From Eutreptiella sp. 'Long Island Sound 2002' (taxonomy: Eukaryota > Protista > Euglenida): DNA of 64,000 nucleotides. Within the stretch, counting starts at the first letter, position 1; the number at the start of each line of letters is the position of its first letter. The notes beneath the pieces are model-generated. The model ran no database searches. It was given only the letters and a program-made list of their open reading frames with translations, and was not told the origin of the DNA. Made by a program: the position numbers and the translations under genes. Below, one piece after another: positions 25,301-63,178 of this stretch. The DNA lies in NCBI GenBank assembly GCA_964036045.1, contig OZ038378.1:7068001-7132000 (forward strand), given 5' to 3'.

Positions 25301-28300
25301 TTTGGCGGCGCCTGTTAGCCTCTCGCCATTGTACATTCCGACCCTCTGTGAGTCCGAACGTGTTTTGGTCGTGTCAACGGAGCCCCTGGATGGCTTGTCA
25401 GGTTTGACTACTCTGGGGTTGGCTGTCCCAGAGATGGGCTGTTGCCCATGCCGATGACCTGGTGCATCCAGATGCACACTCCGAGTCAATGCTGGGTTGA
25501 GCGGGGTGGGGGTGGGGGGGGGCAAAAATTGCAAATGTTTTGGTTTTCTTTCCCGATTTTGAGCCCAAAAAGTGTTTTTGGTTCCGACTCCACTAAAAAT
25601 GGCCTACACATGTTGGGTGAAGAATGATTTTTTTCCAGCAGCCCAAGGCACGTAGGGGTTGTTGGAGGTCACCCAGGAATCTCCATTTTGCAGCCAACCC
25701 ATGCCCGCCTGACCTGAAAATGGCTAAGTCCTCACCCATGGGGCCCTACAGGGGGGTGGATCTAACAAATTTGAAGATAGCACCCGGGATCCCGTCATTG
25801 GTTAGAGGGTCCATATGGCCCACTTGGCCCAACCACGCCTCAGGGTGCGGCTTGGATGTACTTCCGTAGCATCACTCACTGCAGCACCTCAAGCACGCCC
25901 AAATATCTCGGGCTGCCAAAGCCAATGCCACCCATGACAGATGGGCGTTCACGTGTAAGCATTTGCAGGCATAAGAAAAAATAAAAAAAGCACTCAATTC
26001 AGCAATGGGGTGTAACCAAGAGATGGGTCTAGGCCAATGGACCCAGGTAGGTCTACACACTTTGCAACTCACCACTTCGTTGCACGTCTTCAGAGCAAAA
26101 TGGGTGGAGGCTGCAGTGGTCCAGCGTCACATAGGAACACCAAGAGCCTGTCCCACATGGTCAGGAAAAATTGCATCCCTATTCTCCTAGTGAGAATTAG
26201 TTGGATGTAAGTCGAAAGCAACCCAAATGCATGCAGAGGTCAGGGTCACAGGAGATAAGAAAGAAAGACAAAGCATATCAGGAATCAGAGACACGTCGAA
26301 AGCAACCCAAATGCATGCAGAGGTCAGGGTCACAGGAGATAAGAAAGAAAGACAAAGCATATCAGGAATCAGAGACACCTATGACAAAGAAGGATTAGAG
26401 GATAGCCACCAAACATCTGTCCCACCCTGGCATCTACACACCAAGACACAGAACAAGCAAAACCACACCGGTGCGCTGTGCTTTGAACAAATCCATTTCC
26501 TGGCCATGATGAAGAACAGTTCCACTGGTAGTGGCCAGCCCAGTCTCAGGCAAATCGTGGCTGGGCTTGTGGTGAACAGTTGTCATCTGATCTACAAATC
26601 AGATGTCCGGAATGTAAGGCATAAGCACTAGCAACAATGTTGCCCTAGTTTGTATGCTCTAGTAAACGAAAATTGATTGTTGCTTTTTACTTGCGTTCAC
26701 ATAGTGATGAAGCAGCTAAGAAATTGGCGGTTTGTCCTAAGAAATGTCAGCAAATAGTACTTGCGAGCTTTTGTTAAACAAATCTGCACATCCATTTGCT
26801 GCCTTCAAACTTAGTGAGAAGAATTTTGAAAAGTTCAGTTTTGGCCTTTGAATACCACAAGTTGTTATTGATTCATCAATCGAAGTCACCAAATTTGTGC
26901 CCGTAAAGCACCGCATCTGGAAATTGCAAAATGTGGGTTTCAACATCGCATTTCACAAAACTTTAGTTTGGGCTGCCTAAGACTAATGGCAAATTGTTTC
27001 GGTTCAAGCTACTACGCTGTGGTACTGTTCGAGTTGTTAAGAGGACGTACGTCAAAAGAGCATTTGGAAACACATTTACTAGCCCTGCAACAAAAGGCCA
27101 TCACAGTGCCACAGTTTCCAAACCTCTATCACAGGGGAGGGCAAACAAAAATGATAAAAGCTTCCAAGATGAACCGCCACCAGATTTAGCAAGGCTGTTG
27201 TATGCCAACCACTTGGGGGATGACACATAAAGTGCAAAGCATTGTAAACAGAAAAACATCTGCACAAAAGGCCTTACCATCCTCCACCCCCACCCATGTC
27301 ATGTTTCTTCTTTCAATGGGGGTGGGTCCATTGACAAGGGCACCTATGTTTCTTCTTTCAGGGGGGGGGGGGGGGGGAGTTCCATTAAAATAAAAAAAAA
27401 TCTTTGTGTAAGCATTTTCTAACCTGTGCCATCACTTCAAACCTGGGTTGATATATGCTTTGTGCCTCTTGCATCTTTGAGATGGCTGTAGAGCTCACGT
27501 TGGCCACTGCTTTTGCACTTTTTTGACCTTTTGTCGTCTTGCACATGCAGTGCTTGCATTTCAATGTGTGTCACGGTAACCCAGACAGCCACAACATTCC
27601 TTGACAGCTGCAACACGAAATAGTTAGGGACACCTCCAGACCTCAAGTCATACCTCAGTATGAACACAAAATGTTGTCCATCACATGCCACCGTAGAATC
27701 AAGAAACGTGGCAAAAAAAGGCAATTTTTGTATTACTTGGTGAAAAATGCTTGGGGGGGGTGGATTCTTCTTTCCAAGGGGGGCCCATTGACTAAGGGGG
27801 CCATGTTTCCTCTTTCAAAGGGGGGGGGGTCCATTGGCATGGGGGGTCTATCAACATCGGGGGAGGGTGGTGAGTACTGAATGCGACTGCCCCATGCATT
27901 GGGGGGGATTCAGACTCAGACCCTGACCCCAACTTCAGGGAGCTCATGGCGCGGGCAACACGGGCGTGGTGGCCACTGCGTGGGTCGCCATGGGTGCTTG
28001 AGTACCCGTATTGTCCCCAAATGATCACCCAAACCCATCCCAGGGGCAACAGGAGGGTTTCAGGAATTTGTGCTCAGCTGGCGGTCTGTAGGTCGGAGGT
28101 TTGAATCCCGCCGGCCGCGCGGGCTGATTCCTTTTGCTTACCTGGCCCTCGTTCAAATCCCTCTGAGCACAAGCTTTTGATCACCCCCCACCCCTAAAAA
28201 AGTGATATCCAGTCTTAGGGGATAGAGGCCTCAGAATCAAAAAATCCATTGGGGGATTGTCTGATTGGGCAAAATAATGATTTTACAAAGGGTTGGACAT

Positions 28301-49300: not shown

Positions 49301-52300
49301 CACCCCCACCCCATGAAAATTGTCTGAAATTGCCTGGCACAGTCCCTCCTTGCAGAGCATGCATGGAGCATGGCAAGATGACAGCTGTAAAAAGCAATTG
49401 GTTGGGGACCAGCCTTCAAGCATTGTGCCAAAATCCATTGAACCTCTCGGTTGCCAGAAGACTCTGTTAGTACTGTCACTGCTGCTGCTGGAGATGAGCG
49501 ACGCTTTACCACACAAGTCAGGCATTGTTGAACATTTGCATTGTTTAACAGCAGTATGGTCTTTAAAAAAAGGTGGGGAAGAGTCGAGAGCAGGAGAGGG
49601 GAGGAAGGAGGTGCAGAGTCCCCCCAATGAAAAGGGGGACCCACATTGACAAGGCACCGTTTACTGTGTTCGGTTACACATTAGAAGGGGAGAATGGGGG
49701 GGGGGGGGACAGGGGGGGGCTACTGTAGTACGGAGGAGGGGCGCCACGCAACTTGGGACAAGTGGCTGCCCCCTGTAACCCAAGTTGATCAAGGTGAGCA
49801 AATGCACTGATTCCACAACTTACTCATCATCCATTTCCGGGCACTCGGATGAAGATGGGCGTGATGATGAGTCCCTTTCTCCTTCATGGTGCCTCAGCCC
49901 ATAACATGGCGGTCTACCAAGCTCAGCAACCGACCCACCCAGAAGAGCTGACACCCCCACACACCCCTGGGAGGGTATCCCCTCCGAGAGGCACTTTCCC
50001 CAACATCGGGGGAAAACCAGGCAAACCCACCCACCCATCCTCAGACCCCCGCCCCCCGGGTATAGTATCAACAAGCCACTATGCAATGGCCTGTCCCCGA
50101 ACCACCTGAGTGCAGCATATTGTCGCAATACTATTCGGCATGAAACTGCTCTTTCTGCATCCTGGGCAATCCAACGGAATCACGACAAGCAAACACAAAC
50201 AACGAAAAAACAGGAGACTGCTGCAATACAGGCCCAAAAAGCGCTAAAACCTGGGGTTGTGCATGCAACCTCCTGTGCTTCCTTGCTGCTTGCAAAAAGA
50301 TAGGCTTTACCCTGAAATGATGCCATTCCCCCATGTGTGGATCTGTGACTATTGTTCTCCAGGGAATGGTGTGGCTTCTGATACTGGGGGTGTCTGCCGC
50401 TGCACCTTTGCTTGCTTCATCTGCTGAACCCTGTCTTTTTGTTTCTGACTGTTGCATGCAGTTCATGTTGAAAAGTGTTTGGCGAATGTGCACATTGGTC
50501 TGGTGTCCAACATTTGATACCATGGGCAAACCGTTCCACGTGCAACAAAACAACAAGCAACGAAACTCAACTCAGTAAGACCAGTGGTTGGCACAAACAA
50601 ACAGGGCTGGAAGAAGGAGACGATGGAAAACACACAACACTGATGCACACTGCTTGACCTTTCAGGGATCTTATCATTGTAACCTGAGCCTCAGACGCCT
50701 CACCCCACCCCAACCGCACCTCAATGATTACATCAATCCTGTACCCTGAATACACAAACACGTGGTGCTTGCTTTGCAAAGCACGCACCTGCAGAGTGGC
50801 AGCAAAGAAATGGTGCCGAAGGGTTGTTGATTTGGCTACTGCTCATATGATTGGTGCTGACTTGCATGGCCACCTTCTTCCAGGTTGGAGGGTTCTCTCG
50901 AAGCGACAAAGCAAACATGTCATTCAGAAACATGTTGTCCTCATTGATGCCACCTTGATACAGAGGACCACGGGGGGAGGGGGATGGGGTTGAGCATACC
51001 AACATATGGGGGGGGGGGGGGGGTTCTTCAGGGGCACATCCAGGTTCTGGTTCTGGTTGTGGTAAGACACCAGGCCCGTTGCCCTGCACCTCATGTGGCA
51101 CAGATGGCCTAATACCATAGGCGTTAGGTTTGAGGCGCCACCGCCACTCTTGGCCACGTACAGTGCCACAAGATCTCTCAGGGCCAGCTGGGGCCCTTGC
51201 CACCCATACGGGCGCCGCTGTCTCCTTTGGCTCCCTCTGCTCTTATCATGGGCAACGTCTACTCGTCCCTTTTGACCTTGGCCCTGATCTGAGGGGCCTC
51301 ACTGACCCAACATCGTTGCTATAGGAGAGGTGGCGGCTCTAGCACCCATACCTGTCACCTTTCATCCATCGCCTCTTGCTCATCTCTGCGGCCTCCACCG
51401 CCCCAGAAAATTGCGGCTCCCGTGTGCACAGGGGTAGGTGTTGACCTTCACCGTTCACCTTCCGGGTTCCCCCTGAGCTTTTCCCGGCCACTACTGGGCG
51501 AGCCTCTCTCTCAGCTCACTTGCTCCTACACAGCCACCGACCGCTTAACTCCAACCGCCACGCTCTCTTTCTGGGCCACTGGTCTCTGGGTCAAGCCTCT
51601 CGCCGCTCACCTGCTCCAGTACCTGGGTTCGAAGCATAAACCTTGGACCACGGCTCTCCATCCACCACGTTCTCTGCCTGGGCCATTGGACTTTGGGCTA
51701 AGCCTCTCACTGCTCGCTCGCTCCAGTGTGTGTTAGGGCTCAAAGGTGCCATCTCCGACCATTGCTCTCCTGCAGCGATGCTTTCTCCCCTGGCAACTAG
51801 ACTCCAATTGAGCCTGCTCCAATGTGTACTAGGGCTCGAGCCAGCGACGTCTGACAGCTTCCATGTTCTCTCCCCTGCTGATTGGACTCTGGGATGAGCC
51901 TATTGCCGCTCGCCTGCTCTCGTGTGTACTGGGGTATTGAAGCAGCGACATTCGGCAGCATACATGGCATTAGCGTCCGTTTAAACGGACGCTTACGGAC
52001 GCACCCAAAAATCAAAACGGACGCAAACGGACGCACCCCAAAACTGAAACGGACGCAAACGGACGCACCCAATCTGGAAAAACATGTCACTGCTCACAAC
52101 ACACCACGTGCCCTCATAAATTCTACAATATGCAGGGAAAGTCAAAAAAAAAAAAGCAAAAAAAAATTTCCCATTGTGTTCCTGAACCTGCCTACAGTGC
52201 TGTAGAAGAACCCCGCTGGGGTGTGAACCCAGGATCTTCCAGTTGCAGGACGCTGCTTTACCATTAGGGTAGGGCCCATCTCTGGCATACTTCCGCACAG

Positions 52301-55300
52301 GGGTGGTATTCATATTTGGTCCAATTTAGTTTTCATCCACTATTGGGTTTTCTTAAAAAGCTGAGTATTTTGAGTATAGACACATGGTGTGAAAACCCAA
52401 TTTTTCACCCTCTACTCAGTCAAGCAAAATTTCCTTAGCGCCCGTGGTCCGGCACTTCCGGGGCAAAACCTGGCAGGGAGGGGGGGGAGGGAGTCGGCGT
52501 AAAGGGTCCGGTCCCGGCAGCCCCCCTGTGGGTGTCATGCTAGTCCAAAGCACTCTATGTGGCCGGCCATCATACCTGCACAAACACACCCAAAAAGGAA
52601 AAACGGACGCAAACGGACGCACCCACAAATCAAAACGGACGCGAACGGACGCACTCAGAACTCAAAACGGACGCAAACGGACGAGTACCCATATCAAAAC
52701 GGACGTTAATGCCATGTATGTTCGGCAGCACACCTGCGGTGTTACCACTAAGCTGTAGCACACACTTGCCCACCACCTCTCGCCATACGGGCGGGTCACT
52801 CGCCAGGCCATGCGACGCCCGCAATGCCCACACAAGTGTTGTCTCCTTGCTCAGAGGGCTACACGTAGCCTGTCCGCTACTCATACCAGGACTAGGCATA
52901 AGGATACTGTCGCATCCCTGCGGCCGTTTGTCGACGCAGTTGGTCTGCCGCTCGCCCCACCGGTTTGTCGTTGGCCGACGCATGGCACCGTGGGAGCTTG
53001 CCCTGGTGGCCCGGGGCACAGCGCCCCACTCCTTTTATTGCCACTGCGGCTCCTTTTTCTAGGTTAGTTTCATTCAATTGCAGGGCAGTGCATACATTAC
53101 AAGGGAGAGCTGGTAAATTTGGTACTCACGCTTTTGGTGGCTTCGCACTGCACATACAGTACCTCCACAAGGGAGAGCTCTTGCCATTTGGTACCCATGC
53201 CTCTGGTGGCAGCACAGTGCATACATTCATTGCCTCACACGATGCACTGTAGCTGCCCAGGGCTTTGGCGAGCTGAGGGTTTCATTCCACTACCAACAAA
53301 GCTCAAGGGCTTTAGCTTAGCCCAGAAATGTTCATCACAAAAGCACAGGGCAAGGGCATGGCGACCCACTGAAAGATATCATACTGCTGGTACCAATGCT
53401 TGTACACTGTCTGAAAGTAAAGCAAGGAGGACAACCAAGAAAAGGGATGCCCCATGGAGCACAAGCGTGTCAGAATGGGCAGGGGGCAAAAAATTAAGTT
53501 TTGCTTTTTTTCGGGAAGTGCAGGTAGCTCAGGCATCTCCCCAACACCCGTCACCAAAGCTTTTGATGAGCTGACAGGTTGGTCCAAGAAAGCTTGTTTT
53601 TTCCCGATTTGGGGGGTTTTTTTTTCATTGCTTCAGGCACTGTTGGCAAGGGCAAGGGCAGGCTTTGGCGCGCAACCCTCCCCTCGCCAAGCCCAATGTG
53701 TAGTGACAAATGCAAGATGGGGCAGTTGGCCACTAAGACAAAACATCAGAAAAAATGGGAAAAGAGTTGTTTGCAGCTGGCAACCCCCTGGAGGGGGTGG
53801 CTTTGTCCAATACACACAATCTCGCCTGGACAACAACAGGCTTGAGTGAGAGAATATCACAACGCAATGGGCAGAGAGGATGGATGCCCCAAAAACGCAA
53901 CTGCAAGGAAGGGTCATACCATAGATAACCATTTTATGGTCCTTGACAACTGCAGAATGATGGATTCTTGGTTTTGGGAAGTACCCCAGGCACTCTAGTC
54001 GAAACCACTGCTGTGATTCAAGGCTGCACAAACGAGAAATGTCTGTCTGCTGCTTGAAATTGCTGCACAAGATGCTGTCCACCGCAAGAAATGATGCACG
54101 AGCTGTGTTGGGGTTCAGCAACCAAACCACCAAATCACTACTCCAAAGAACCTTTCTTTCTTCAAATGATGGCGGTTGGAGGATAACCGACAGTTGTCTC
54201 AAATTAAAAAGGGGATGGAAGGTTAATCAACTGTTACAACAAGAAAACGAGACTGCCCTGGTGATTTCATACATTCTATTGCCTTTGGTATGGCACTTTG
54301 AGGAGAGAGGAGCGACGTTGTGGGGAGGTCGTAAACTACAGGTAGATGAACAATCCCCATCGCAGTGGAAAACTGCCGGAGAGGTGCTTTTGGGGGCCTG
54401 TAATCATTATTAGGAGGGCCTGGTTGGTGCTACATTGGTTTATACATACTCCCATTGTCACCAAATGATCACCCAACAGCAGCCCAAGGGCCCACAGAGG
54501 TTGTTGGAGGTCAGCCGAAAATTGTGGTTTTTCAGCCAACGCATGGCGGCCTGAAAACGGCTACGTCCTTATGTCGTGGTGGGGGTGGTGGTGGGGCCCA
54601 TTAAGGGGGGCCGATCTTGGAAAATGGAGATAGCACTGGGACCCCTGTGATTGGTCAGGGGGTCCATGTAGAAGAAAAAAATGGAATGGGAACTGGGTCC
54701 CAAGGGACGCACAGCGGCGGCCAACCAAAAGCCAACCAAATACAAAACCGAAAACAGCAAGTTGAGGGGTTTCAAGGGGGCCCATGGGCCCAGGCTACAT
54801 GGTCCTAGCGGCCACTATGTGGGTCCCCATGGGTGCTTGAGTACCTGTGTTGTTACCAAATGATCACCCAAGCCCATCTGGGGCCGACGAAAAGGTTTTG
54901 GAAAAAGGTGAATTTTCTGTTGCCTTCGGCGCCCACCTCGCAAAGAATCTCCCCCGAGCAATGCACACCCAAATGACACACACAGCCAATACCCGTAGAA
55001 AACAAATACGGCCTAAAACATGCTTCATATAGTGAGGATGCTCATTTGGCGTGGTCATGATATAAAAAAAAATATGTTTCAGAAACTTCAATTTTTGAGC
55101 TGCCCGGGTGAAAAATTGCACGAGCAGGTTGTGTGTACCAATCTCTTGGGAGACACCCCCCCCAACATCCAATACCCAAACCGGGTGAAAAACACATAAA
55201 TACTGCCTGAAACATGCTTAACATAGCACGAATGGTCACAGTATCAAAAAAATAAGTCTTGGAAACTTCGATTGCTGAGCTTCCCAGGGTGAACAACTAC

Positions 55301-58300
55301 ACCAGCCGGTTGTGTACAATCCCCCCCCACACCCAATATCCGTAAAAAACACAGAAATACAACCTAAACCATGCCTTACATGGCAGGTGTTTTGAGACTC
55401 AATAATCTTTTGGTTTTTTTCAATTTTGAGCCGAAAAAGTTTTTTGGGTCCCGCCTCCATAGGGTTTGCGTGGAGCGGAGTGGGATGCAGTTTTCACTAA
55501 GTCGGTGTTGTTGGCGATCTTAGTTACCTATGGTACCCACTCTAAGGGGTGCAAATGGGGATGTTGTGACAGCATATGCGTACTAGGATCCAAAAGGATG
55601 TTTTTGCAGTCTCTAGCCTTGCCTTGGGCCGGTCAAGGCCCGTGTGAAAGACGCGAAATCCCCAGTTCCACCAATAATGGTTTGCATTTGTGCATTGGCT
55701 GGTACACAACCTGCTTCTGCAATTTTTTGCGCTAGGCAGTTGTTTCGACCCCAAAAAGGGGGTTCATTTTTTCAGCATTTTTGCCCCCCCCCAAATTAGG
55801 GTTGGGGGGGGGGGTTTGAGGACCAAAAACTCAATAGGAGATGCGCTTATTGGACAAAACAATGATTTTACATGAGGTTAAACAAAAAATTCAACCCCTT
55901 GAGGTAGGTGCATGGATAGGCCCAAAAGGGGGGTATGTAGCGCTTTCCCCTCTTTGCGGGCCTGCCTTGGCTGAGATCTAACAACCTTTGCGAGGTGATT
56001 TCAAGTGCCACACATCTTAGCTTGAAAATAGCAAAGTCCTCACTTGCATGGGCCCATAGTGGGGGACAAATGGAGTTTGGACCCGGGACCCTGCCATTGG
56101 TTAGGGCTTGCACAAGATAAGAGTTGTTTAGGGCCTGGGTCCAAATCAACGCACAGCGGCCGCAGTACTCAAAGAAATTTTGACCCCCCCCCCCCCACCC
56201 TTGCCCTCCCACAAAAAAAAGCCAATATCCCCCTTGGTACCCCCCCCCCCCCCCGCAACACCCAAACAGGGTGAAAAACACGCAAAAAGGGTCTAAAACA
56301 TGCTTTACATAGCATATTTCATCATTGTAAGTGGTCACAATATCAAAAAAATGTTTACCAAGGCACACAAGCACCAGCGGCCGCGAAACACAGGACGATA
56401 GTGCTTCCGCAGTTCAGAGTAATGCCCATTCGGGTTAGGGGGTCCATATACATGGAAAAAATTGTGCAGGACCCGAGTCTAAATCAACGCAGCGGTAACA
56501 ATATGCAAAGAACTGACCCCCCCACTCCCCGCCCTAAAAATTTGTACCCAGGAAATTGGGGGGGGGGGGGTAGAGGGGTTAAAATCGAAAAATCCATTGG
56601 GGGGCAATTTGTCTCCCAAAATGATGATTTCACAAGGCCTTAGATATCCAATATCATGCTTGGGGGGTATGCTACGCAAATGACCCCCAAATTAGGGCGG
56701 TCTTTGGCACCTGCTTCTGCACTTGATCTCTTCGAGTTGATTTGTGTGCCTTTGTAACCAAAAACTGCCTATGCAATTGTTGAGTCAATATCATTCACTT
56801 GCATATCTGTTCCAATCTCCAATACATTGCAGCATTTGTTTAAAGAAACACATGCACACAAACACACACGCTTGCCACCTGAACATTCATCATTTGCACA
56901 CCAACTAACTGCCCTGGATGGGTCGTGTGCATGTTATGAATGCTGACCTGAAAATTTCATCAGATTCTTTCACAGATGATAACAGGAAGCAAAACGCACT
57001 TCACTGGAGAAAACACAACATCCACGGGCCAGAGTCCCTGCCTTGAGGTATGCCACGTACTATCAAAAACTCCATTTGGAACTTTCTTCAACAGCACTTT
57101 CGGGGATCCTTTTCCAACAAAAATCAAGAACCACAGCAACACACAGAGGGCAACGGCCGACACACCTGTATTGGAAAGTATCGTTGCGAAAGGAGTTGCC
57201 CGTGTATGTATTCATTGTACCATAACCACCAAAGAAATATAGGCTTCCATTGCATGCAACTGCTGAGGCACGACTACAAAGGGGAAAAATATAGGGCCAC
57301 GCCAGCATAACCAAACAGAGATGGAGTTGCGCACCCTGGTACCCACTGTGGGATTTGCATCATCTGCGTATCATCATGACAGTTTGTGTACAGTTCTTTT
57401 TCTTCAAACCCTTGCGACGTCTGGTGTTTGGTCACTGTTTCTAGCACGGCGGGCACGCAGTAACAAGAAAAAAGCGACACAAATGGATGTACATTAAACA
57501 ACAATCAGCATGGATGCAAATTGTTCCATGCTGCAACCTCGTTCTGCAGCAAACCGTTGGTTCTATTGTGCTGGGGAGGGTTTTTTGCAACTATTTTGTG
57601 TCCTCAGTTTTTTTTGCACATTTTGTTAATTTGCACTCAGCATAATTTTTTTTGGCTGACTTTTGAGGTGCGACTGGTGCGCCGGATTGGTGCGCCGGAT
57701 TACCCATACACACAGTCAGACAACAGGACTCAGGAACAACCCTGGGATTTGGTGCATCCATGAGCTTGCTTCCCACATTGTGAATGTGTTGCCAAATGAG
57801 AGGGGATGCCAATGATCCCTAGAAACCCATGTTAAAACCAATATTTTTAATTTTTGGCCAAAAATTAATACGCTGACCGAAAATTGACCCTTTTTGGGGG
57901 GGGGGGTTGACGGGTTTAAATGGGAAAAACTCTAACCCCATGGGGTGCTCTACGGGATTGGGTGCCATTTTCACCCGAGGGTGGGCCGGGGGGGGGGGGG
58001 GGTCCTCACCAATTTCTTTGCGAAACAATATTAAAATGGTCCTCGGGCAGAAAACAATCCTTTTGCACATTTCCAGCTGCAGCACGTATCGCGTGCAGTT
58101 TTGATGGGTCAACCTCTTCTCACACCCTGATATGTCATAACTGCCATAGCGCATAATGCGCACCATTGAAATCTCATCATCATAACTGCCATAGCACACT
58201 ATGCCCACCATTGAAATCTCATCATCATCTCACCTGTTACAAATTGCACACCATTTGCAACCCACAGACCTTCAACATATGCCATGGATAAGTTTTCATC

Positions 58301-61300
58301 GGCTGTTTCCAAATCAGACAATCGAACCAAAATGGAATCATGGCACTCTGGTGCTCACCAGTGAAATTGCATCATTGTCCTTTGTAACGCTTACCAACAA
58401 CAGATTGCCCAGAACTGCAAAGCATCCAGCACTTGCATGCTCTTGACATGAACAAATCAATGTTGGGTGCGAACAAAAATTCTACTCCTGTTTCCAAATC
58501 AGACAATCGAACCAAAATGGAATCATGGCACTCTGGTGCTCACCAGTGAAATTGCATCATTGTCCTTTGTAACGCTTACCAACAACAGATTGCCCAGAAC
58601 TGCAAAGCATCCAGCACTTGCATGCTCTTGACATGAACAAATCAATGTTGGGTGCGAACAAAAATTCTACTCCTGTTTCCAAATCAGACAATCGAACCAA
58701 AATGGAATCATGGCACTCTGGTGCTCACCAGTGAAATTGCATCATTGTCCTTTGTAACGCTTACCAACAACAGATTGCCCAGAACTGCAAAGCATCCAGC
58801 ACTTGCATGCTCTTGACATGAACAAATCAATGTTGGGTGCAAACAAAAATTCTACTCCTGTTTCCAAATCAGACAATCGAACCAAAATGGAATCATGGCA
58901 CTCTGGTGCTCACCAGTGAAATTGCATCATTGTCCTTTGTAACGCTCACCAACAACAGATTGCCCAGAACTGCAAAGCATCCAGCACTTGCATGCTCTTG
59001 ACATGAACAAATCAATGTTGGGTGCGAACAAAAATTCTACTCCTGTTTCCAAATCAGACAATCGAACCAAAATGGAATCATGGCACTCTGGTGCTCACCA
59101 GTGAAATTGCATCATTGTCCTTTGTAACGCTCACCAACAACAGATTGCCCAGAACTGCAAAGCATCCAGCACTTGCATGCTCTTGACATGAACAAATCAA
59201 TGTTGGGTGCAAACAAAAATTCTACTCCTGTTTCCAAATCAGACAATCGAACCAAAATGGAATCATGGCACTCTGGTGCTCACCAGTGAAATTGCATCAT
59301 TGTCCTTTGTAACGCTCACCAACAACAGATTGCCCAGAACTGCAAAGCATCCAGCACTTGCATGCTCTTGACATGAACAAATCAATGTTGGGTGCGAACA
59401 AAAATTCTACTCCTGTCTCCAAATCAGACAATCGAACCAAAATGGAATCATGGCACTCTGGTGCTCACCAGTGAAATTGCATCATTGTCCTTTGTAACGC
59501 TCACCAACAACAGATTGCCCAGAACTGCAAAGCATCCAGCACTTGCATGCTCTTGACATGAACAAATCAATGTTGGGTGCGAACAAAAATTCTACTCCTG
59601 TTTCCAAATCAGACAATCGAACCAAAATGGAATCATGGCACTCTGGTGCTCACCAGTGAAATTGCATCATTGTCCTTTGTAACGCTTACCAACAACAGAT
59701 TGCCCAGAACTGCAAAGCATCCAGCACTTGCATGCTCTTGACATGAACAAATCAATGTTGGGTGCAAACAAAAATTCTACTCCTGTTTCCAAATCAGACA
59801 ATTGAACCAAAATGGAATCATGGCACTCTGGTGCTCACCAGTGAAATTGCATCATTGTCCTTTGTAACGCTCACCAACAACAGATTGCCCAGAACTGCAA
59901 AGCATCCAGCACTTGCATGCTCTTGACATGAACAAATCAATGTTGGGTGCGAACAAAAATTCTACTCCTGTTTCCAAATCAGACAATCGAACCAAAATGG
60001 AATCATGGCACTCTGGTGCTCACCAGTGAAATTGCATCATTGTCCTTTGTAACGCTCACCAACAACAGATTGCCCAGAACTGCAAAGCATCCAGCACTTG
60101 CATGCTCTTGACATGAACAAATCAATGTTGGGTGCGAACAAAAATTCTACTCCTGTTTCCAAATCAGACAATCGAACCAAAATGGAATCATGGCACTCTG
60201 GTGCTCACCAGTGAAATTGCATCATTGTCCTTTGTAACGCTTACCAACAACAGATTGCCCAGAACTGCAAAGCATCCAGCACTTGCATGCTCTTGACATG
60301 AACAAATCAATGTTGGGTGCGAACAAAAATTCTACTCCTGTTTCCAAATCAGACAATCGAACCAAAATGGAATCATGGCACTCTGGTGCTCACCAGTGAA
60401 ATTGCATCATTGTCCTTTGTAACGCTCACCAACAACAGATTGCCCAGAACTGCAAAGCATCCAGCACTTGCATGCTCTTGACATGAACAAATCAATGTTG
60501 GGTGCGAACAAAAATTCTACTCCTGTTTCCAAATCAGACAATCGAACCAAAATGGAATCATGGCACTCTGGTGCTCACCAGTGAAATTGCATCATTGTCC
60601 TTTGTAACGCTTACCAACAACAGATTGCCCAGAACTGCAAAGCATCCAGCACTTGCATGCTCTTGACATGAACAAATCAATGTTGGGTGCGAACAAAAAT
60701 TCTACTCCTGTCTCCAAATCAGACAATCGAACCAAAATGGAATCATGGCACTCTGGTGCTCACCAGTGAAATTGCATCATTGTCCTTTGTAACGCTCACC
60801 AACAACAGATTGCCCAGAACTGCAAAGCATCCAGCACTTGCATGCTCTTGACATGAACAAATCAATGTTGGGTGCGAACAAAAATTCTACTCCTGTCTCC
60901 AAATCAGACAATCGAACCAAAATGGAATCATGGCACTCTGGTGCTCACCAGTGAAATTGCATCATTGTCCTTTGTAACGCTTACCAACAACAGATTGCCC
61001 AGAACTGCAAAGCATCCAGCACTTGCATGCTCTTGACATGAACAAATCAATGTTGAGTTGAGTGCGAAAATTCCAATACATAGGGCTTTGACAGTTTCCA
61101 TAGTCCTGTTTCGAAATCAGACAATCGAACCAAAAAGGAATCATGACACTCCGGTGCTCACCAGTGAAATTTCATCACCATGTTTGGCTGAAGTCATAGT
61201 CTGCGGCAGATGTGCACGTTGGCAGATTGGTACACAGGCCCTTCAGGAATGAGGTGGCTTGCAGGGTCAAACTATATTGTGCATCTGAACCCCGCATCCC

Positions 61301-63178
61301 AAATGGCTATGCGCAGGAATTTTCGCAAACACAGCGTGCAGGTCAATACGTGCGTTTTGAGAGCCCGTACGGTAGATGCTGTTGCTGTGAAGCCAGCCTC
61401 TGCTAGGAGAAGCTGGTGTGGTTGCGGGCGGTCTGTCCTTGGCCGATATGGCCCACTGCTGCAGTACCTTGCCCAACACAAATAACATTGCTGGTGCCTA
61501 TGCTTTTGTATGAACCATGCAACACTGCGACAAACCTTCTGCCTTCCATGCCATGAGAAGAAACTGTACTTGAGTTCAACTGGATACTTGCCAGAGGGGA
61601 GCCAAGATGTTGTGCCGAATTCTCAGTATACCTGGCATTGTTGGGCTTGACTGAATGAGAAAAATGGGAGGGAGCAACGAACCTCCAGCATGGCGTCACA
61701 CGCAACGAAATGAAACAACCTCAAACGGCGAAACAGCTGGTCCTCAGGCCTGTACTTGAAGGGGGTTGTGGGTCAGTGAGACCTTTTCCAGGTGAGCTAG
61801 GCGACGTTGTAGGTGGAACGTTTGGTAGACTAACCTTGTTGACAAAGAGCTACTTGATTGCAACCACTCAGAGGTACATAACCTCAAAAGGGAGAGGGAA
61901 TCACGATGGAAATTGGTGCGAGAAACGAAACGCACTGTCAGAGCGAGAACCTATTGCATTACACTGTTCGGAGCGTTGTCTGCATACAGAAAGAGTTGCG
62001 GGTGACCAACCCGCTCAATGTCCTTGATGAGGTCAAAGACACCATGCATTACCGGCAGGCCGCAAGAGCTTCTACCTGCTGGGAGAGGGCTGTTGTTGTT
62101 GTTGGGGAGATGTTGCGTTGGCCCGAAGAATTCAGTACATTTCAATTTTTTCACGCTAGACAACTTCATGTCGTTGCGTGTGCGGGCATCGAGATGCAAT
62201 TTATTCTGTTCAAGCTTGCTGGTCCTCCTGATCCTTTTGACTGGATCATGTCCGACAAATCCTACCCGCGAGTACCGGAATCAAGGAAAGCAATGCTTCC
62301 AATACGAAGGATGCCGGGCAGGCCAAAGATCCGAGAAAAGTCGCGCAGAACCCCGGAAGCGCCCTGCAGTGTGGAGCTCAGACAATGCTCCGGAAGCCAG
62401 TGTTGCACCTGTAGGCGCAGAAGTGCACCGCCGCACTCCTTCTATGGGATGCATAAAGCTGCGTGGTTCAATCCCCTTCTGAAACCTGGAAAGAAGGAAG
62501 TATGTTCTGGGAAGCAGTACGCACTGAGCATCACCAGTCAGGTGATTGGGCGAACAACAGTGCATTACCCACAGTCAGACTGCTCTTCGACGGGAGGTGC
62601 GAGTAGGCCGTGCAGTGCTGCAACGCGCTCCCCCAAAGGGCTGATTCCTTTTCTTTTTTGTTTTGACTTGAACAACGCCAACGACCAGCGACCAGCGTAA
62701 TAGCAAGAAGGGAGTCCAAAGCGACCCTGAAGAAGGGAGCACCCGTTGAGCGAGGGCTTGACTGTCATTGGTCTCTTGGTCTGTTTGACTGCGGGATGGT
62801 CTGTGGACAGCAGAAGTATGAAAGGGAACCTGAAAGACGAGTGTAATTGCACAAGTCACTTTGCGGCACACAGTCGCAGGTAGTACACCGATACGGCCAA
62901 TATTTTATTTATTTATGGCCTGGAACTGTCCAATGTAGCTAATATTCTCAAACAGCATATCCCTGTCTGTCGCGCCCCAGTCTGCAGACCTTTACGTACA
63001 CGCAAGGATTCTACCACGCACGTCCACCACGCACGTCACGAGGTGACCAATGTCCCCTCAAGAGCAAGTTGAGCGACTCTTCAAGTTTCTTTGTGGCAAA
63101 AGGGGCTAGGCTCGCAGAGTCTCTATTTGGTGGCAAAACACTGTCGGATGACGGCCGTCGACGCTGGTGTGCAAGCAT
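152..63178 (-). CDS. Large multi-exon minus-strand coding locus (Kelch-repeat N-terminal half, then IQ and PAM2-like motifs); one gene or several co-directional genes
   Basis: More than 20 GT-AG-bounded minus-strand segments with open frames from a candidate ATG at 63178 to TGA at 152-154. Many adjacent exons are phase-compatible, but the chain was not verified across about 43-14 kb. Confidence 0.45.
1414..1585. repeat. 42-bp minisatellite, about 4 units
   Basis: gtatccc recurs at 1421, 1461, 1503 and 1545. Confidence 0.9.
2390..2600 (-). mobile_element. Partial family A core and terminus
   Basis: atgattttacaaggggttggacatccgatatcataccttgcggtatgctac...cttcagggtga|tttc. Confidence 0.55.
2690..3060 (+). 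mobile_element. Non-LTR retrotransposon 3' remnant (CCHC zinc knuckle)
   Basis: LLCRGPWETRIHMLWECPKW (2710-2769) resembles the C-terminal C-x-E-T-x2-H-x4-C-P motif of LINE ORF2. Confidence 0.6.
3100..3900 (-). mobile_element. Degenerate retroelement RNase H remnant (pseudogenised)
   Basis: Across frameshifts and stops: QTSHTE..ELWVAIEAL..CMDSK..KIDLWKRL..WIGTHAG..N, which is RNase HI motif order. Ends at the (CA)n(CT)n tract at about 3079-3102. Confidence 0.65.
7059..7107 (+). repeat. Telomere-like hexamer tract (TAGGGY/TTAGGG variants)
   Basis: ctagggttagagctagggctagggctagggctaggggtaggggtaggg; opposite-strand cctaaccctaacc at 6913. Confidence 0.7.
7953..8722 (+). mobile_element. Tc1/mariner-pogo-like non-autonomous element with transposase C-terminal remnant
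   Basis: Imperfect TIR AACC(A)CCCCCCTATTA..ATCAC, flanked by TA at 7951 and 8723; subterminal GCGTGATATTATTT repeats. The internal frame LFVELCYSGLESATSHHDVPKVFQELGY resembles the DDE_1 tail (weak). Confidence 0.55.
9227..9568 (-). CDS. S/P-rich exon with PAM2-like motif SDLRASAPPFIP
   Basis: Acceptor tttctctgttcacAG, donor AAG|GTctct; 114 codons. The motif resembles PAM2 (xxLNxxAxEFxP). Confidence 0.7.
11362..11652 (-). CDS. Internal exon (AEGANIWSADLARSKSDL...QQHSPQ)
   Basis: 97 codons, phase 0-0, GT-AG. Confidence 0.7.
13530..13866 (-). CDS. Internal exon (...HPFIKEGALLDDIAQYLVIRDDPPPSLW...SSFWQ)
   Basis: Acceptor tcttacccacAG, donor CAG|GTctgt; 337 nt open frame within ORF 13491..13886. 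Confidence 0.7.
15290..15660 (-). repeat. Dispersed repeat family D with internal tRNA-like module (second copy at 52140-52440)
   Basis: atttggtccaat...ctgagtattttgagtatagacac...gtgaaaacccaatttttcaccct is shared with 52312-52410. tRNA-like segment at 15350-15418; local 25-bp direct repeat at 15421 and 15495. Confidence 0.7.
16293..16863 (-). mobile_element. Non-autonomous Helitron2/Helentron-like element (family A) with tRNA-derived module
   Basis: Sub-terminal inverted repeats CACCTCGAAGAGAGG (16313) and CCTCTCTTCGAGGTG (16848); CAGT/GCAA microsatellite; B-box GGTTCGAATCC at 16548; conserved ~200-bp core. Confidence 0.75.
19305..19358. repeat. (CA)n microsatellite, about 27 units
   Basis: Read directly from the sequence. 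Confidence 0.98.
23914..24502 (-). mobile_element. Family A element with two convergent tRNA-derived modules
   Basis: End hairpin TGCC-TTC-GGCA (23920-23930), subTIRs at 23934 and about 24487, tRNA-like modules 24071-24140 (+) and 24172-24243 (-). Confidence 0.8.
25039..25290 (+). mobile_element. Partial family A relative in the opposite orientation
   Basis: aaaa|TCACCccccaaaagttgtcggatc, then the reverse complement of the family core (cttgtaaaatcatgag...cattggggg equivalent). Confidence 0.5.
26211..26378. repeat. Perfect 84-bp tandem duplication
   Basis: gtcgaaagcaacccaaatgc starts at 26211 and 26295. Confidence 0.95.
26469..26591 (-). CDS. Internal exon (QMTTVHHKPSHDLPETG...DLFKAQRT)
   Basis: Acceptor gatttgtAG, donor G|GTgtgg; phase 1-1. 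Confidence 0.5.
27945..28605. repeat. Dispersed host repeat family B (also at 12520-12640, 25630-25820, 40900-41040, 41820-41960, 54440-54910, 56080-56190, 56430-56510)
   Basis: Shared motifs gggtgcttgagtacccgtattgtcaccaaatgatcacccaaacccatc and gggtccatgt..gaaaaaa..ggacctgggtctaaatc. Confidence 0.7.
28070..28402 (-). mobile_element. Family A element, hairpin end missing
   Basis: tRNA 3'-half at 28078-28120, family core, subTIR end ...CTTCGGGGTGA|tttt at 28402. Confidence 0.75.
28606..29223 (-). mobile_element. Family A element, complete, with two convergent tRNA-derived modules; empty site visible at about 56165
   Basis: 18-bp inverted repeat match (28626 and 29205-29222), hairpin at 28612-28622. 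Flanks caaagaaa|...|ttttgacccc match the uninterrupted caaagaaattttgacccc at 56170-56187. Confidence 0.85.
29968..30147 (-). CDS. Exon with two IQ calmodulin-binding motifs
   Basis: AAATRIQAMQRRRKVRQ and IAATKIQAFERGRRGRQ match IQxxxRGxxxR; 180 nt, phase 1-1, GT-AG. Confidence 0.85.
32808..33030 (-). CDS. Charged low-complexity exon (DKGAARRNKEEERRELGSP...EKEDETDVL)
   Basis: Acceptor gatgttgcAG, donor TTG|GTatgt; 223 nt open frame. Confidence 0.65.
36854..40010 (-). CDS. Non-Kelch internal exons 39856-40010, 39301-39430, 38358-38564, 36854-37015
   Basis: GT-AG-bounded open frames. The first three join in phase (0-2, 2-0, 0-0): DPGQTSPSTM...; HVPIWKRETRPQKP...; DESKRAARQLHQML.... No domain recognised. 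Confidence 0.7.
37215..37430. repeat. Degenerate ~113-bp tandem repeat, 2 units
   Basis: caagcaccaatcccagcccag...cgcatgcaac...cgcccatcaaaatttccaagcactttt occurs twice. Confidence 0.8.
41178..41747 (-). mobile_element. Family A element with tRNA-derived module and a second B-box
   Basis: subTIRs at 41190 and about 41732; (CAGT/CAGG)n tract; GGTTCGAATCC at 41404 and GGTTCAAATCC at 41473. Confidence 0.8.
41990..42335 (-). mobile_element. Older, shorter family A relative
   Basis: cacctcgcagaga at 41995; diverged core (ttgtctcccaaaatgatgattttac...ggggtatgctgtgcgaatg); end caacgtctcttcaaggtca. Confidence 0.55.
43984..57440 (-). CDS. Kelch-repeat (beta-propeller) coding region, about 10 exons
   Basis: Exons 57317-57440, 57166-57273, 53920-54023, 50789-50953, 48662-48844, 48358-48481, 47832-48039 and 46381-46542 join in phase; 45155-45283 joins 43984-44425, with the link from 46381 unresolved. 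Translation: ...PSLRASAVACNGSLYFFGG...NDTFQYSLESQQW...PKPRIHHSAVVKDHKMVIYGG...LNDMFALSLRENPPTW...HSAAVHPTRNSMVVFGG...LFEFSFATQEW...YNHSAAIINNTMYIYGG...FAFNFSILSW. This is the Kelch R-x-x-H / GG / D-x-x-x-W pattern. Confidence 0.9.
45155..45283 (-). CDS. Kelch exon (LGCTSTFFDELHVLDTVSG...WRGQEDNVPSR)
   Basis: Phase 2-2; joins 44425 to give PSRAQAASAVF. Confidence 0.75.
45720..46010. repeat. Two diverged ~190-bp tandem units
   Basis: aacggccct..ttggagac.cgtac.tgaca...ggc.attg.cctgaa..ttcagga...ctgaaaa..ggctgaaaac at about 45728 and 45921. Confidence 0.65.
46381..46542 (-). CDS. Kelch exon (AYVPVLRDFPATVTCDHWVFLFGGERN...)
   Basis: Acceptor ccttacAG, donor CAG|GTcttg; phase 0-0. Confidence 0.8.
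47832..48039 (-). CDS. Kelch exon (ILSWRTVYNP...VEWKTFNTISDGDGEK)
   Basis: Acceptor ctctttgcAG, donor AAG|GTattt; phase 2-0. Confidence 0.8.
48358..48481 (-). CDS. Kelch exon (PLLYNHSAAIINNTMYIYGGY...VFAFNF)
   Basis: GT-AG, phase 1-2. Absent from the supplied ORF track; found by manual translation. Confidence 0.9.
48662..48844 (-). CDS. Kelch exon (VHPTRNSMVVFGGKIGGG...FEFSFATQEW)
   Basis: Acceptor tttatttctgcAG, donor G|GTgtgt; phase 1-1. Confidence 0.9.
50789..50953 (-). CDS. Kelch exon (GINEDNMFLNDMFALSLRENPPTW...CHSA)
   Basis: Phase 1-1, GT-AG. The join to 48844 gives CHSAAVHPTRNSMVVFGG. Confidence 0.85.
51480..51945. repeat. Degenerate ~100-bp tandem repeat, 4-5 units, each with a B-box-like motif
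   Basis: Recurrent ctgggcca(c/t)tgg.ct.tggg..aagcctctc.c.gctc..ctgctccag..t..gggYtcRaa. Confidence 0.6.
51959..52720. mobile_element. Non-autonomous TIR DNA transposon with 8-bp TSD (hAT- or P-type), carrying a tRNA-like module
   Basis: TIR CATACATGGCATTAGCGTCCGTTT vs AAACGGACGTTAATGCCATGTATG (23/24); TSD TTCGGCAG at 51951-51958 and 52721-52728; many subterminal AAACGGACGC decamers. Confidence 0.85.
53920..54023 (-). CDS. Kelch exon (LESQQWFRLECLGYFPKPRIHHSAVVKDHKMVIYG)
   Basis: Acceptor tttgtgcAG, donor G|GTatga; phase 2-1; joins 57166 upstream and 50953 downstream. Confidence 0.9.
54913..55998 (-). mobile_element. Family A variant (~1.1 kb) with different cargo and co-varied subTIRs
   Basis: Hairpin tgccttcggc at 54921; CACCTCGCAAAG (54934) is a perfect inverted repeat of CTTTGCGAGGTG (55986); two ~190-bp internal tandem modules. 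Confidence 0.65.
56500..56740 (-). mobile_element. Partial family A core and terminus
   Basis: aaaaatccattgggggg...gatatccaatatcatgcttgggggg...cttgatctcttcgagttga. Confidence 0.55.
57166..57273 (-). CDS. Kelch exon (RASAVACNGSLYFFGG...NDTFQY)
   Basis: Acceptor tttcccctttgtAG, donor AG|GTgtgt; 108 nt, phase 2-2. Confidence 0.9.
58303..61055. repeat. 185-bp tandem array, 15 units (last one truncated), about 98-99% identical
   Basis: aaatcagacaatcgaacc recurs at 58311, 58496, 58681 ... 60901 (step 185). I saw only four variable sites. Confidence 0.98.
58310..60970 (-). ncRNA. Tandem array of 15 dual-guide box C/D snoRNA genes (core of unit 1 = 58314-58375, repeating every 185 bp)
   Basis: Minus strand: C box ATGATGc, guide ATTTCACTG, D' GTGA, C' ATGATT, guide TGGTTCGATTG, D box CTGA (62-nt core). 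The guides are complementary to conserved LSU rRNA motifs CCAGUGAAAU and AAUCGAACCA. Confidence 0.75.
61112..61182 (-). ncRNA. Diverged paralogous box C/D snoRNA flanking the array
   Basis: Perfect C box GTGATGA (61172-61178), D' GTGA (61158-61161), C' ATGATT (61139-61144), D CTGA (61117-61120). Both guides are unchanged while the internal spacer has substitutions. Confidence 0.75.
62300..63178 (-). CDS. Candidate 5' exons of the minus-strand gene (MLAHQRRRPSSDSVLPP...; FKSKQKRKGISPLGERVAALHGLL...; FQKGIEPRSFMHP...)
   Basis: Strong pyrimidine-rich acceptors at 63198, 62830/62801 and about 62486; donor GTaatg at 62568. Exact junctions are unresolved. Confidence 0.45.

Follow-up and report, generated by a model that had tools for sequence, protein, structure and literature searches.

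A 185-bp tandem repeat in the DNA analysed here, a stretch of 64,000 nucleotides that we call the window, is most likely a tandemly amplified gene for a compact (~62–70 nt) box C/D snoRNA with two guides, each predicted to direct methylation of one residue of LSU rRNA. This reading is based on the architecture of the repeated module, the structure of the repeat, the complementarity of both guides to eukaryotic LSU rRNA, and the coincidence of the predicted targets with methylations mapped in Euglena gracilis. The positions of the features are given in Table 1.

The array has a period of 185 bp, with 14.9 copies and 99% matches as determined with Tandem Repeats Finder. A pattern search recovered 16 modules on the minus strand, 15 of them in the array and one in a flanking copy, which bears out the initial annotation of this DNA as an array of about 16 dual-guide modules with their boxes in the order C-D'-C'-D. 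The T of UGAUG is at 61177 in the flanking copy and then recurs through the array from 60964 to 58374 in exact 185-bp steps; the genes are arranged head-to-tail, all on one strand. The remaining array copies lie at multiples of 185 below 60904–60965, the last of them at 58314–58375, and homology, judged by aligning the flanking unit with the array units, stops 11 nt past the last box D. This alignment also showed that the spacer of the flanking unit carries a 27-nt insertion and further indels when compared with the array. The 14 full units are variable at only 4 of their 185 positions. Three of these are outside the snoRNA and one is in the D guide, and any change within the 62-nt core is limited to one of the 15 array copies.

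We also estimated copy number from read depth, as had been proposed when the array was first described. In a DNA run from the same organism, words of the unit had a depth of 24–47 versus 3.2 for unique flank. This corresponds to roughly 8–15 copies and agrees with there being no large further array of the 185-bp unit in the genome. A run labelled as a second organism also contains the unit. About 75 nt downstream of the array end (58135–58228, minus strand) there are two 45-bp tandem repeats that are 91% alike. They read AUGAUGA-G-AUUUCAAUGG-UG.G-CA...GUGCUAUGG and resemble the snoRNA's 5' half (~70% alike), including box C, the D' guide with a C>A change, and the hairpin. Both are without the D guide and box D, and they look like decayed half copies of the snoRNA.

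Table 1. Positions of the snoRNA array, its copies and the elements of the first array copy (numbered within the window)
Feature	Position	Strand	Details
Homogenised tandem array	58303..61055	-	14 full 185-bp units (snoRNA + spacer), then a snoRNA-only partial unit
Diverged first (flanking) unit	60970..61182	-	snoRNA copy + spacer; from alignment
Flanking snoRNA copy, box C to box D (CUGA)	61117..61178	-	box C GUGAUGA, full match to consensus
First array snoRNA copy, box C to box D	60904..60965	-	62 nt; from pattern search
Box C, AUGAUGC	60959..60965	-	6/7 match to consensus (RUGAUGA); every array copy has C at position 7
D' guide, AUUUCACUG	60949..60957	-	pairs with LSU CAGUGAAAU; position 5 opposite the G before AAAUACC
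Box D', GUGA	60945..60948	-	degenerate (consensus CUGA)
D'-C' spacer	60932..60944	-	13 nt; 4-bp hairpin GCAC-CAGA-GUGC
Box C', AUGAUUC	60925..60931	-	degenerate
D guide, UGGUUCGAUUG	60909..60919	-	pairs with LSU UAAUCGAACCA; position 5 (A) opposite the U of AAUCG
Box D, CUGA	60904..60907	-	canonical
Inter-snoRNA spacer	60785..60903	-	119 nt, downstream of box D; no second RNA gene recognised
Singleton G>A at position 6 of the D guide	59803	-	one array copy (GGUUCAAUUG); adjoins the methylation position

Each array module reads AUGAUGC-A-AUUUCACUG-GUGA-13 nt-AUGAUUC-CAUUU-UGGUUCGAUUG-U-CUGA and spans 62 nt from box C to box D. As expected of a box C/D snoRNA, box C is near the 5' end and box D near the 3' end. 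The internal boxes D' and C' are present in the order C-D'-C'-D and are both degenerate, with the 13-nt hairpin between them. The flanking copy, in which a perfect box C had been noted and is indeed seen, differs from the array core at five positions: the first and the seventh of box C, two bases within the D'-C' loop and a single base immediately 5' to the D guide. The alignment shows no change in either guide or in boxes D', C' and D, consistent with the initial description, which put the differences in the spacers and at both ends of box C; the D'-C' hairpin is preserved in the flanking copy via a G-U pair. A contig of the DNA run used for the depth estimate (X2) matches positions 60893–60968 only, the snoRNA, and then continues into unrelated sequence; this is a third snoRNA copy, elsewhere in the genome and with unrelated flanks. 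The differences listed for this copy are in the loop (60938) and box C' (60931 and 60926), and both of its guides are intact. Some features of the module count against the snoRNA reading. At position 7 of the array box C, a C faces a U and is unpaired, boxes D' and C' are degenerate, and the terminal stems are weak.

In box C/D snoRNAs, the rRNA residue opposite the fifth nucleotide upstream of box D or D' is 2'-O-methylated. Because the window contains no rRNA and gave no Rfam matches, we fetched LSU loci from metagenomes for comparison, a set of 120 loci carrying GACUAAUCGAACCAUCUAG. None of the 120 fits the E. gracilis-specific bases, so there is no euglenid LSU among them. One locus, L068, is eukaryotic LSU rRNA by Rfam at both target regions, and duplexes were scored against it. 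The D guide forms 10 Watson-Crick pairs and one G-U pair with UAAUCGAACCA, with the fifth nucleotide upstream of box D opposite the U of AAUCG, that is, the U of AAUCGAACC. UAAUCGAACCA is present in 120 of the 120 fetched loci, which were themselves selected by that motif, and AAUCGAACC is written in capitals, denoting conservation, in the Rfam eukaryotic LSU consensus.

The position of this U was determined by placing yeast G908 on the fetched LSU sequences with ten known yeast and human sites. A single register fits nearly all loci and sites, and in this register the target U is yeast position 922. Given a constant offset of 300 between the two numberings (Gm1208 = Gm908, psi1260 = psi960), the target U is E. 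gracilis position 1222. All E. gracilis modifications have been tabulated with their yeast, Leishmania and human equivalents (Table S6 of PMC7672448), and position 1222 is listed there as Um1222 with no equivalent in any of these three. As a check on the register, Cm1218 falls on a C and psi1235 on a U in 91 of 91 loci. By this placement, the predicted D target can be firmly assigned as the equivalent of E. gracilis Um1222. In this alga's own LSU the expected target segment of the D guide would be AAUCGAACCA. In a machine-read version of Table S5 of PMC7672448, the sites of one LSU piece end with 1217 and those of 'LSU 5' start with 1218, so in E. gracilis Um1222 appears to be ~5 nt away from a fragment's 5' end. 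The D-guide pairing would then begin at the second nucleotide of E. gracilis LSU fragment 5, and the location of Um1222 near a fragment 5' end fits the published theme of Euglena snoRNAs being aimed at rRNA extremities.

The D' guide forms a 9-bp duplex with CAGUGAAAU in the L068 LSU, with the fifth nucleotide upstream of box D' facing the G before AAAUACC. This duplex is short, which counts against the snoRNA reading. Six of its pairs are to invariant bases and three are to a variable stretch, and CAGUGAAAU occurs in about 8 of the 20 LSU loci that reach that far. The Rfam consensus at this second site is acagUGAAAUACCAC, in which lower case marks the 5' part as variable. The second motif that had been called conserved is therefore conserved in part, in that the GAAAUACCAC portion is conserved whereas the CCAG portion varies among eukaryotes. 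Because of this variation, D' pairing depends on this alga's own rRNA, and the D' reading would presuppose CAGUGAAAUACC in its LSU.

The register in the D' region was anchored on GCUUGACUCUAG, the last U of which is yeast U2421 and E. gracilis Um2909. With this anchor, Gm2879, Gm2883, Am2887, Gm2897, psi2899 and psi2904 fall on matching bases in 25 of 25 loci, and yeast C2392 (a site taken from PMC8536666) also falls on a C. The D' target G is 61–65 nt (up to 78) 3' of the yeast U2421 equivalent. In E. gracilis, psi2970 and Gm2971 are at +61 and +62 from Um2909 and fit the U-G before AAAUACC if the spacing is 62. A spacing of 62 was seen in three loci, and a spacing of 63 or 64 puts a listed Gm or Am on a conserved U or C. 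Of the 25 loci, 21–24 also agree at the sites in between, psi2914, Gm2925, psi2943 and Gm2953. The D' target is probably the equivalent of Gm2971, an assignment that requires the E. gracilis spacing to be 62 nt; this residue is marked as seen by cryo-EM and has no equivalent listed in other species (PMC7672448). The prediction that both guides aim at LSU rRNA by the fifth-nucleotide rule therefore holds, since both pair with eukaryotic LSU and land on residues that are methylated in E. gracilis, Um1222 firmly and Gm2971 probably.

The initial annotation had also equated the D' site with the site of yeast snR190 and human SNORD12. The SNORD12B/C site in human is Gm3899 (PMC8677010). The same residue is G2395 in yeast and Gm2883 in E. 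gracilis, and it is the third G of CAGCGGGGAAAG, within GCGGGGAAAG. Its equivalent in the fetched loci lies 87–91 nt (up to 104) 5' of the predicted D' target G. An early register for yeast G2395, which used three U positions, favoured snR190/SNORD12 and was overturned by the GCUUGACUCUAG anchor. Because this anchor places G2395 upstream, by ~90 nt, the equation is wrong. The Rfam covariance models for SNORD12 and snR190 gave no match in 57900–61500 at E-values up to 10. Both of these RNAs resemble the array snoRNA in that they are box C/D RNAs with a D' element that pairs with LSU domain V. They differ from it in their target, which is G2395/Gm3899 rather than the G before AAAUACC.

To gauge chance pairing, shuffled spacers were compared with a 3.43-kb LSU. 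A 10-bp duplex over position 5, as formed by the D guide, was reached in 1.6% of trials and a 9-bp duplex over position 5, as formed by the D' guide, in 2.8% of trials, so that the joint chance for both guide matches is ~4 in 10,000. When the D criterion was applied to the 553 other CTGA sites in the window, 7 passed, which equals the chance rate, and none of the 7 has a box C upstream. Chance becomes negligible once both targets must also be mapped methylations. There was no other recurrent or conserved rDNA match for either guide in the fetched loci, including 26 that extend more than 3.5 kb upstream. A scan of viral contigs with the LSU motif returned 6 matches; none of these is rRNA by Rfam, so we regard them as chance matches.

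Several other searches gave no result. No Rfam family matched anywhere in the window at gathering scores, and none matched in 57900–61500 at E-values up to 10. Folding of the unit is energetically no more favourable than that of shuffled sequences. A Euglena spliced-leader sequence had no match in the window, and full-text literature searches with the guide sequences and site names returned noise only. In each unit, the spacer (60785–60899, minus strand) folds into a long, imperfect hairpin, and UU-ACA-AAG stands between this and the next box C, a layout that recalls single-hairpin pseudouridine guides. A pseudouridine-guide (hairpin-ACA) RNA in the spacer was considered and rejected, with a fold z-score of -1.2 and no bipartite match to conserved rDNA. 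A tRNA gene was suspected from the T-arm-like GGUUCGAUU, and a tRNA scan found none.

In two estuary metatranscriptome assemblies, a self-closing contig of 215 nt spans the entire unit, at depths of 9.6 and 4.3. Neither assembly has any coverage of the unique flank. A DNA origin of the contigs is conceivable, because a 15-copy repeat could assemble where a single-copy flank does not. As unstranded, assembled sequences, the contigs give weak support for transcription of the unit and are not proof of it.

The main alternative is that the array is a satellite derived from a snoRNA gene, with inert or poorly functional copies, and that the flanking copy, the third copy or both are the working genes. 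All 15 array copies have AUGAUGC where the flanking copy has GUGAUGA, with the C-U mismatch at position 7, and the 99% identity reflects homogenisation rather than selection; the copy with a guide mutation and the decayed half copies that adjoin the array point in the same direction. We nonetheless consider this unlikely. The kink-turn of box C/D RNAs is formed by the GA dinucleotides of boxes C and D, and these are intact in all copies. Moreover, the core is altered in only 1 of the 15 array copies, and the unit occurs in RNA libraries.

It is also conceivable that the RNA binds pre-rRNA at both sites as a folding or processing chaperone and not as a methylation guide. The precedent for this is yeast snR190, which carries a C'/D' guide yet has a predicted site that is unmethylated (PMC8536666). 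The degenerate boxes C' and D' would agree with such a role, as would the apparent position of the E. gracilis D target ~5 nt from an LSU fragment 5' end, where help with processing is conceivable. This alternative is very unlikely given that the homologous E. gracilis residues are methylated and that both guides place their position 5 precisely opposite these residues. The joint chance of the guide matches, which is calculated before the mapped sites and the four ordered boxes are taken into account, also makes it extremely improbable that we are dealing with an ordinary satellite in which the boxes and the rRNA complementarity arose by chance, even though there is no Rfam match and the fold energy is not above shuffles. 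Both guides have in addition been kept in the separately evolving flanking copy and in the third copy. We thus favour a tandemly amplified gene for a double-guide snoRNA.

No host gene was recognised around the array; a Pfam search of 15 neighbouring ORFs yielded one sub-threshold Kelch-repeat match, ~4 kb from the array. An ORF of 264 aa that adjoins the array (61906–62700, plus strand) has no Pfam match and gave weak zinc-knuckle/gag-like leads in a protein atlas (score 0.79). Because of these leads, it may be a retroelement remnant. Elsewhere in the window, on the plus strand, there are two short arrays with a 32-bp unit of AAACGGACGC decamers (51983–52072 and 52600–52705), ~500 bp apart, and an exact 84-bp tandem duplication (26211–26378).

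If the array encodes a double-guide snoRNA, we suggest that it would be transcribed as a multi-unit precursor from which single snoRNAs are trimmed out. The C/D and C'/D' motifs of each snoRNA would be the sites of assembly with Snu13, Nop56/Nop58 and fibrillarin. In this alga, pairing of the D element with LSU UAAUCGAACCA would then direct 2'-O-methylation of the U of AAUCG, the Um1222 equivalent, and pairing of the D' element with LSU CAGUGAAAU would direct methylation of the G before AAAUACC, probably the Gm2971 equivalent.

The ribosome of E. gracilis is the most heavily modified known, with 349 modifications (PMC7672448), and this species has over 200 snoRNAs (PMC6366073). Our results suggest that two rRNA methylations so far listed only for Euglena may be common to a distant euglenid. 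If the alga studied here is a marine euglenid and both sites are methylated, part of the record-high LSU methylation of Euglena would be older than the divergence of marine from freshwater photosynthetic euglenids, an idea for which we see about an even chance. Were it true, one of the ancient sites would be located where an rRNA fragment ends, and the guide for this ancient part would be a conserved double-guide snoRNA encoded in multi-copy arrays. The analysis also adds an annotated snoRNA gene with two testable target residues, of a kind that repeat masking would hide.

Tandem snoRNA arrays as such are already known in Euglena, and what we describe is no new kind of system. What is added is modest and consists of two specific predicted sites, both so far found in Euglena only, together with the correction regarding SNORD12/snR190. 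Both Euglena and trypanosomatids have documented clusters of genes for modification-guide snoRNAs (PMC2784804), in agreement with what the initial annotation stated about Euglena; the arrangement is not unusual for this lineage. Like the clusters of E. gracilis, the array consists of compact two-guide box C/D snoRNAs arranged head-to-tail on one strand in reiterated units, and like the E. gracilis system as a whole its targets are Euglena-type extra LSU methylations. By contrast, the array unit has a single recognisable gene, whereas the clusters of Euglena are mixed.
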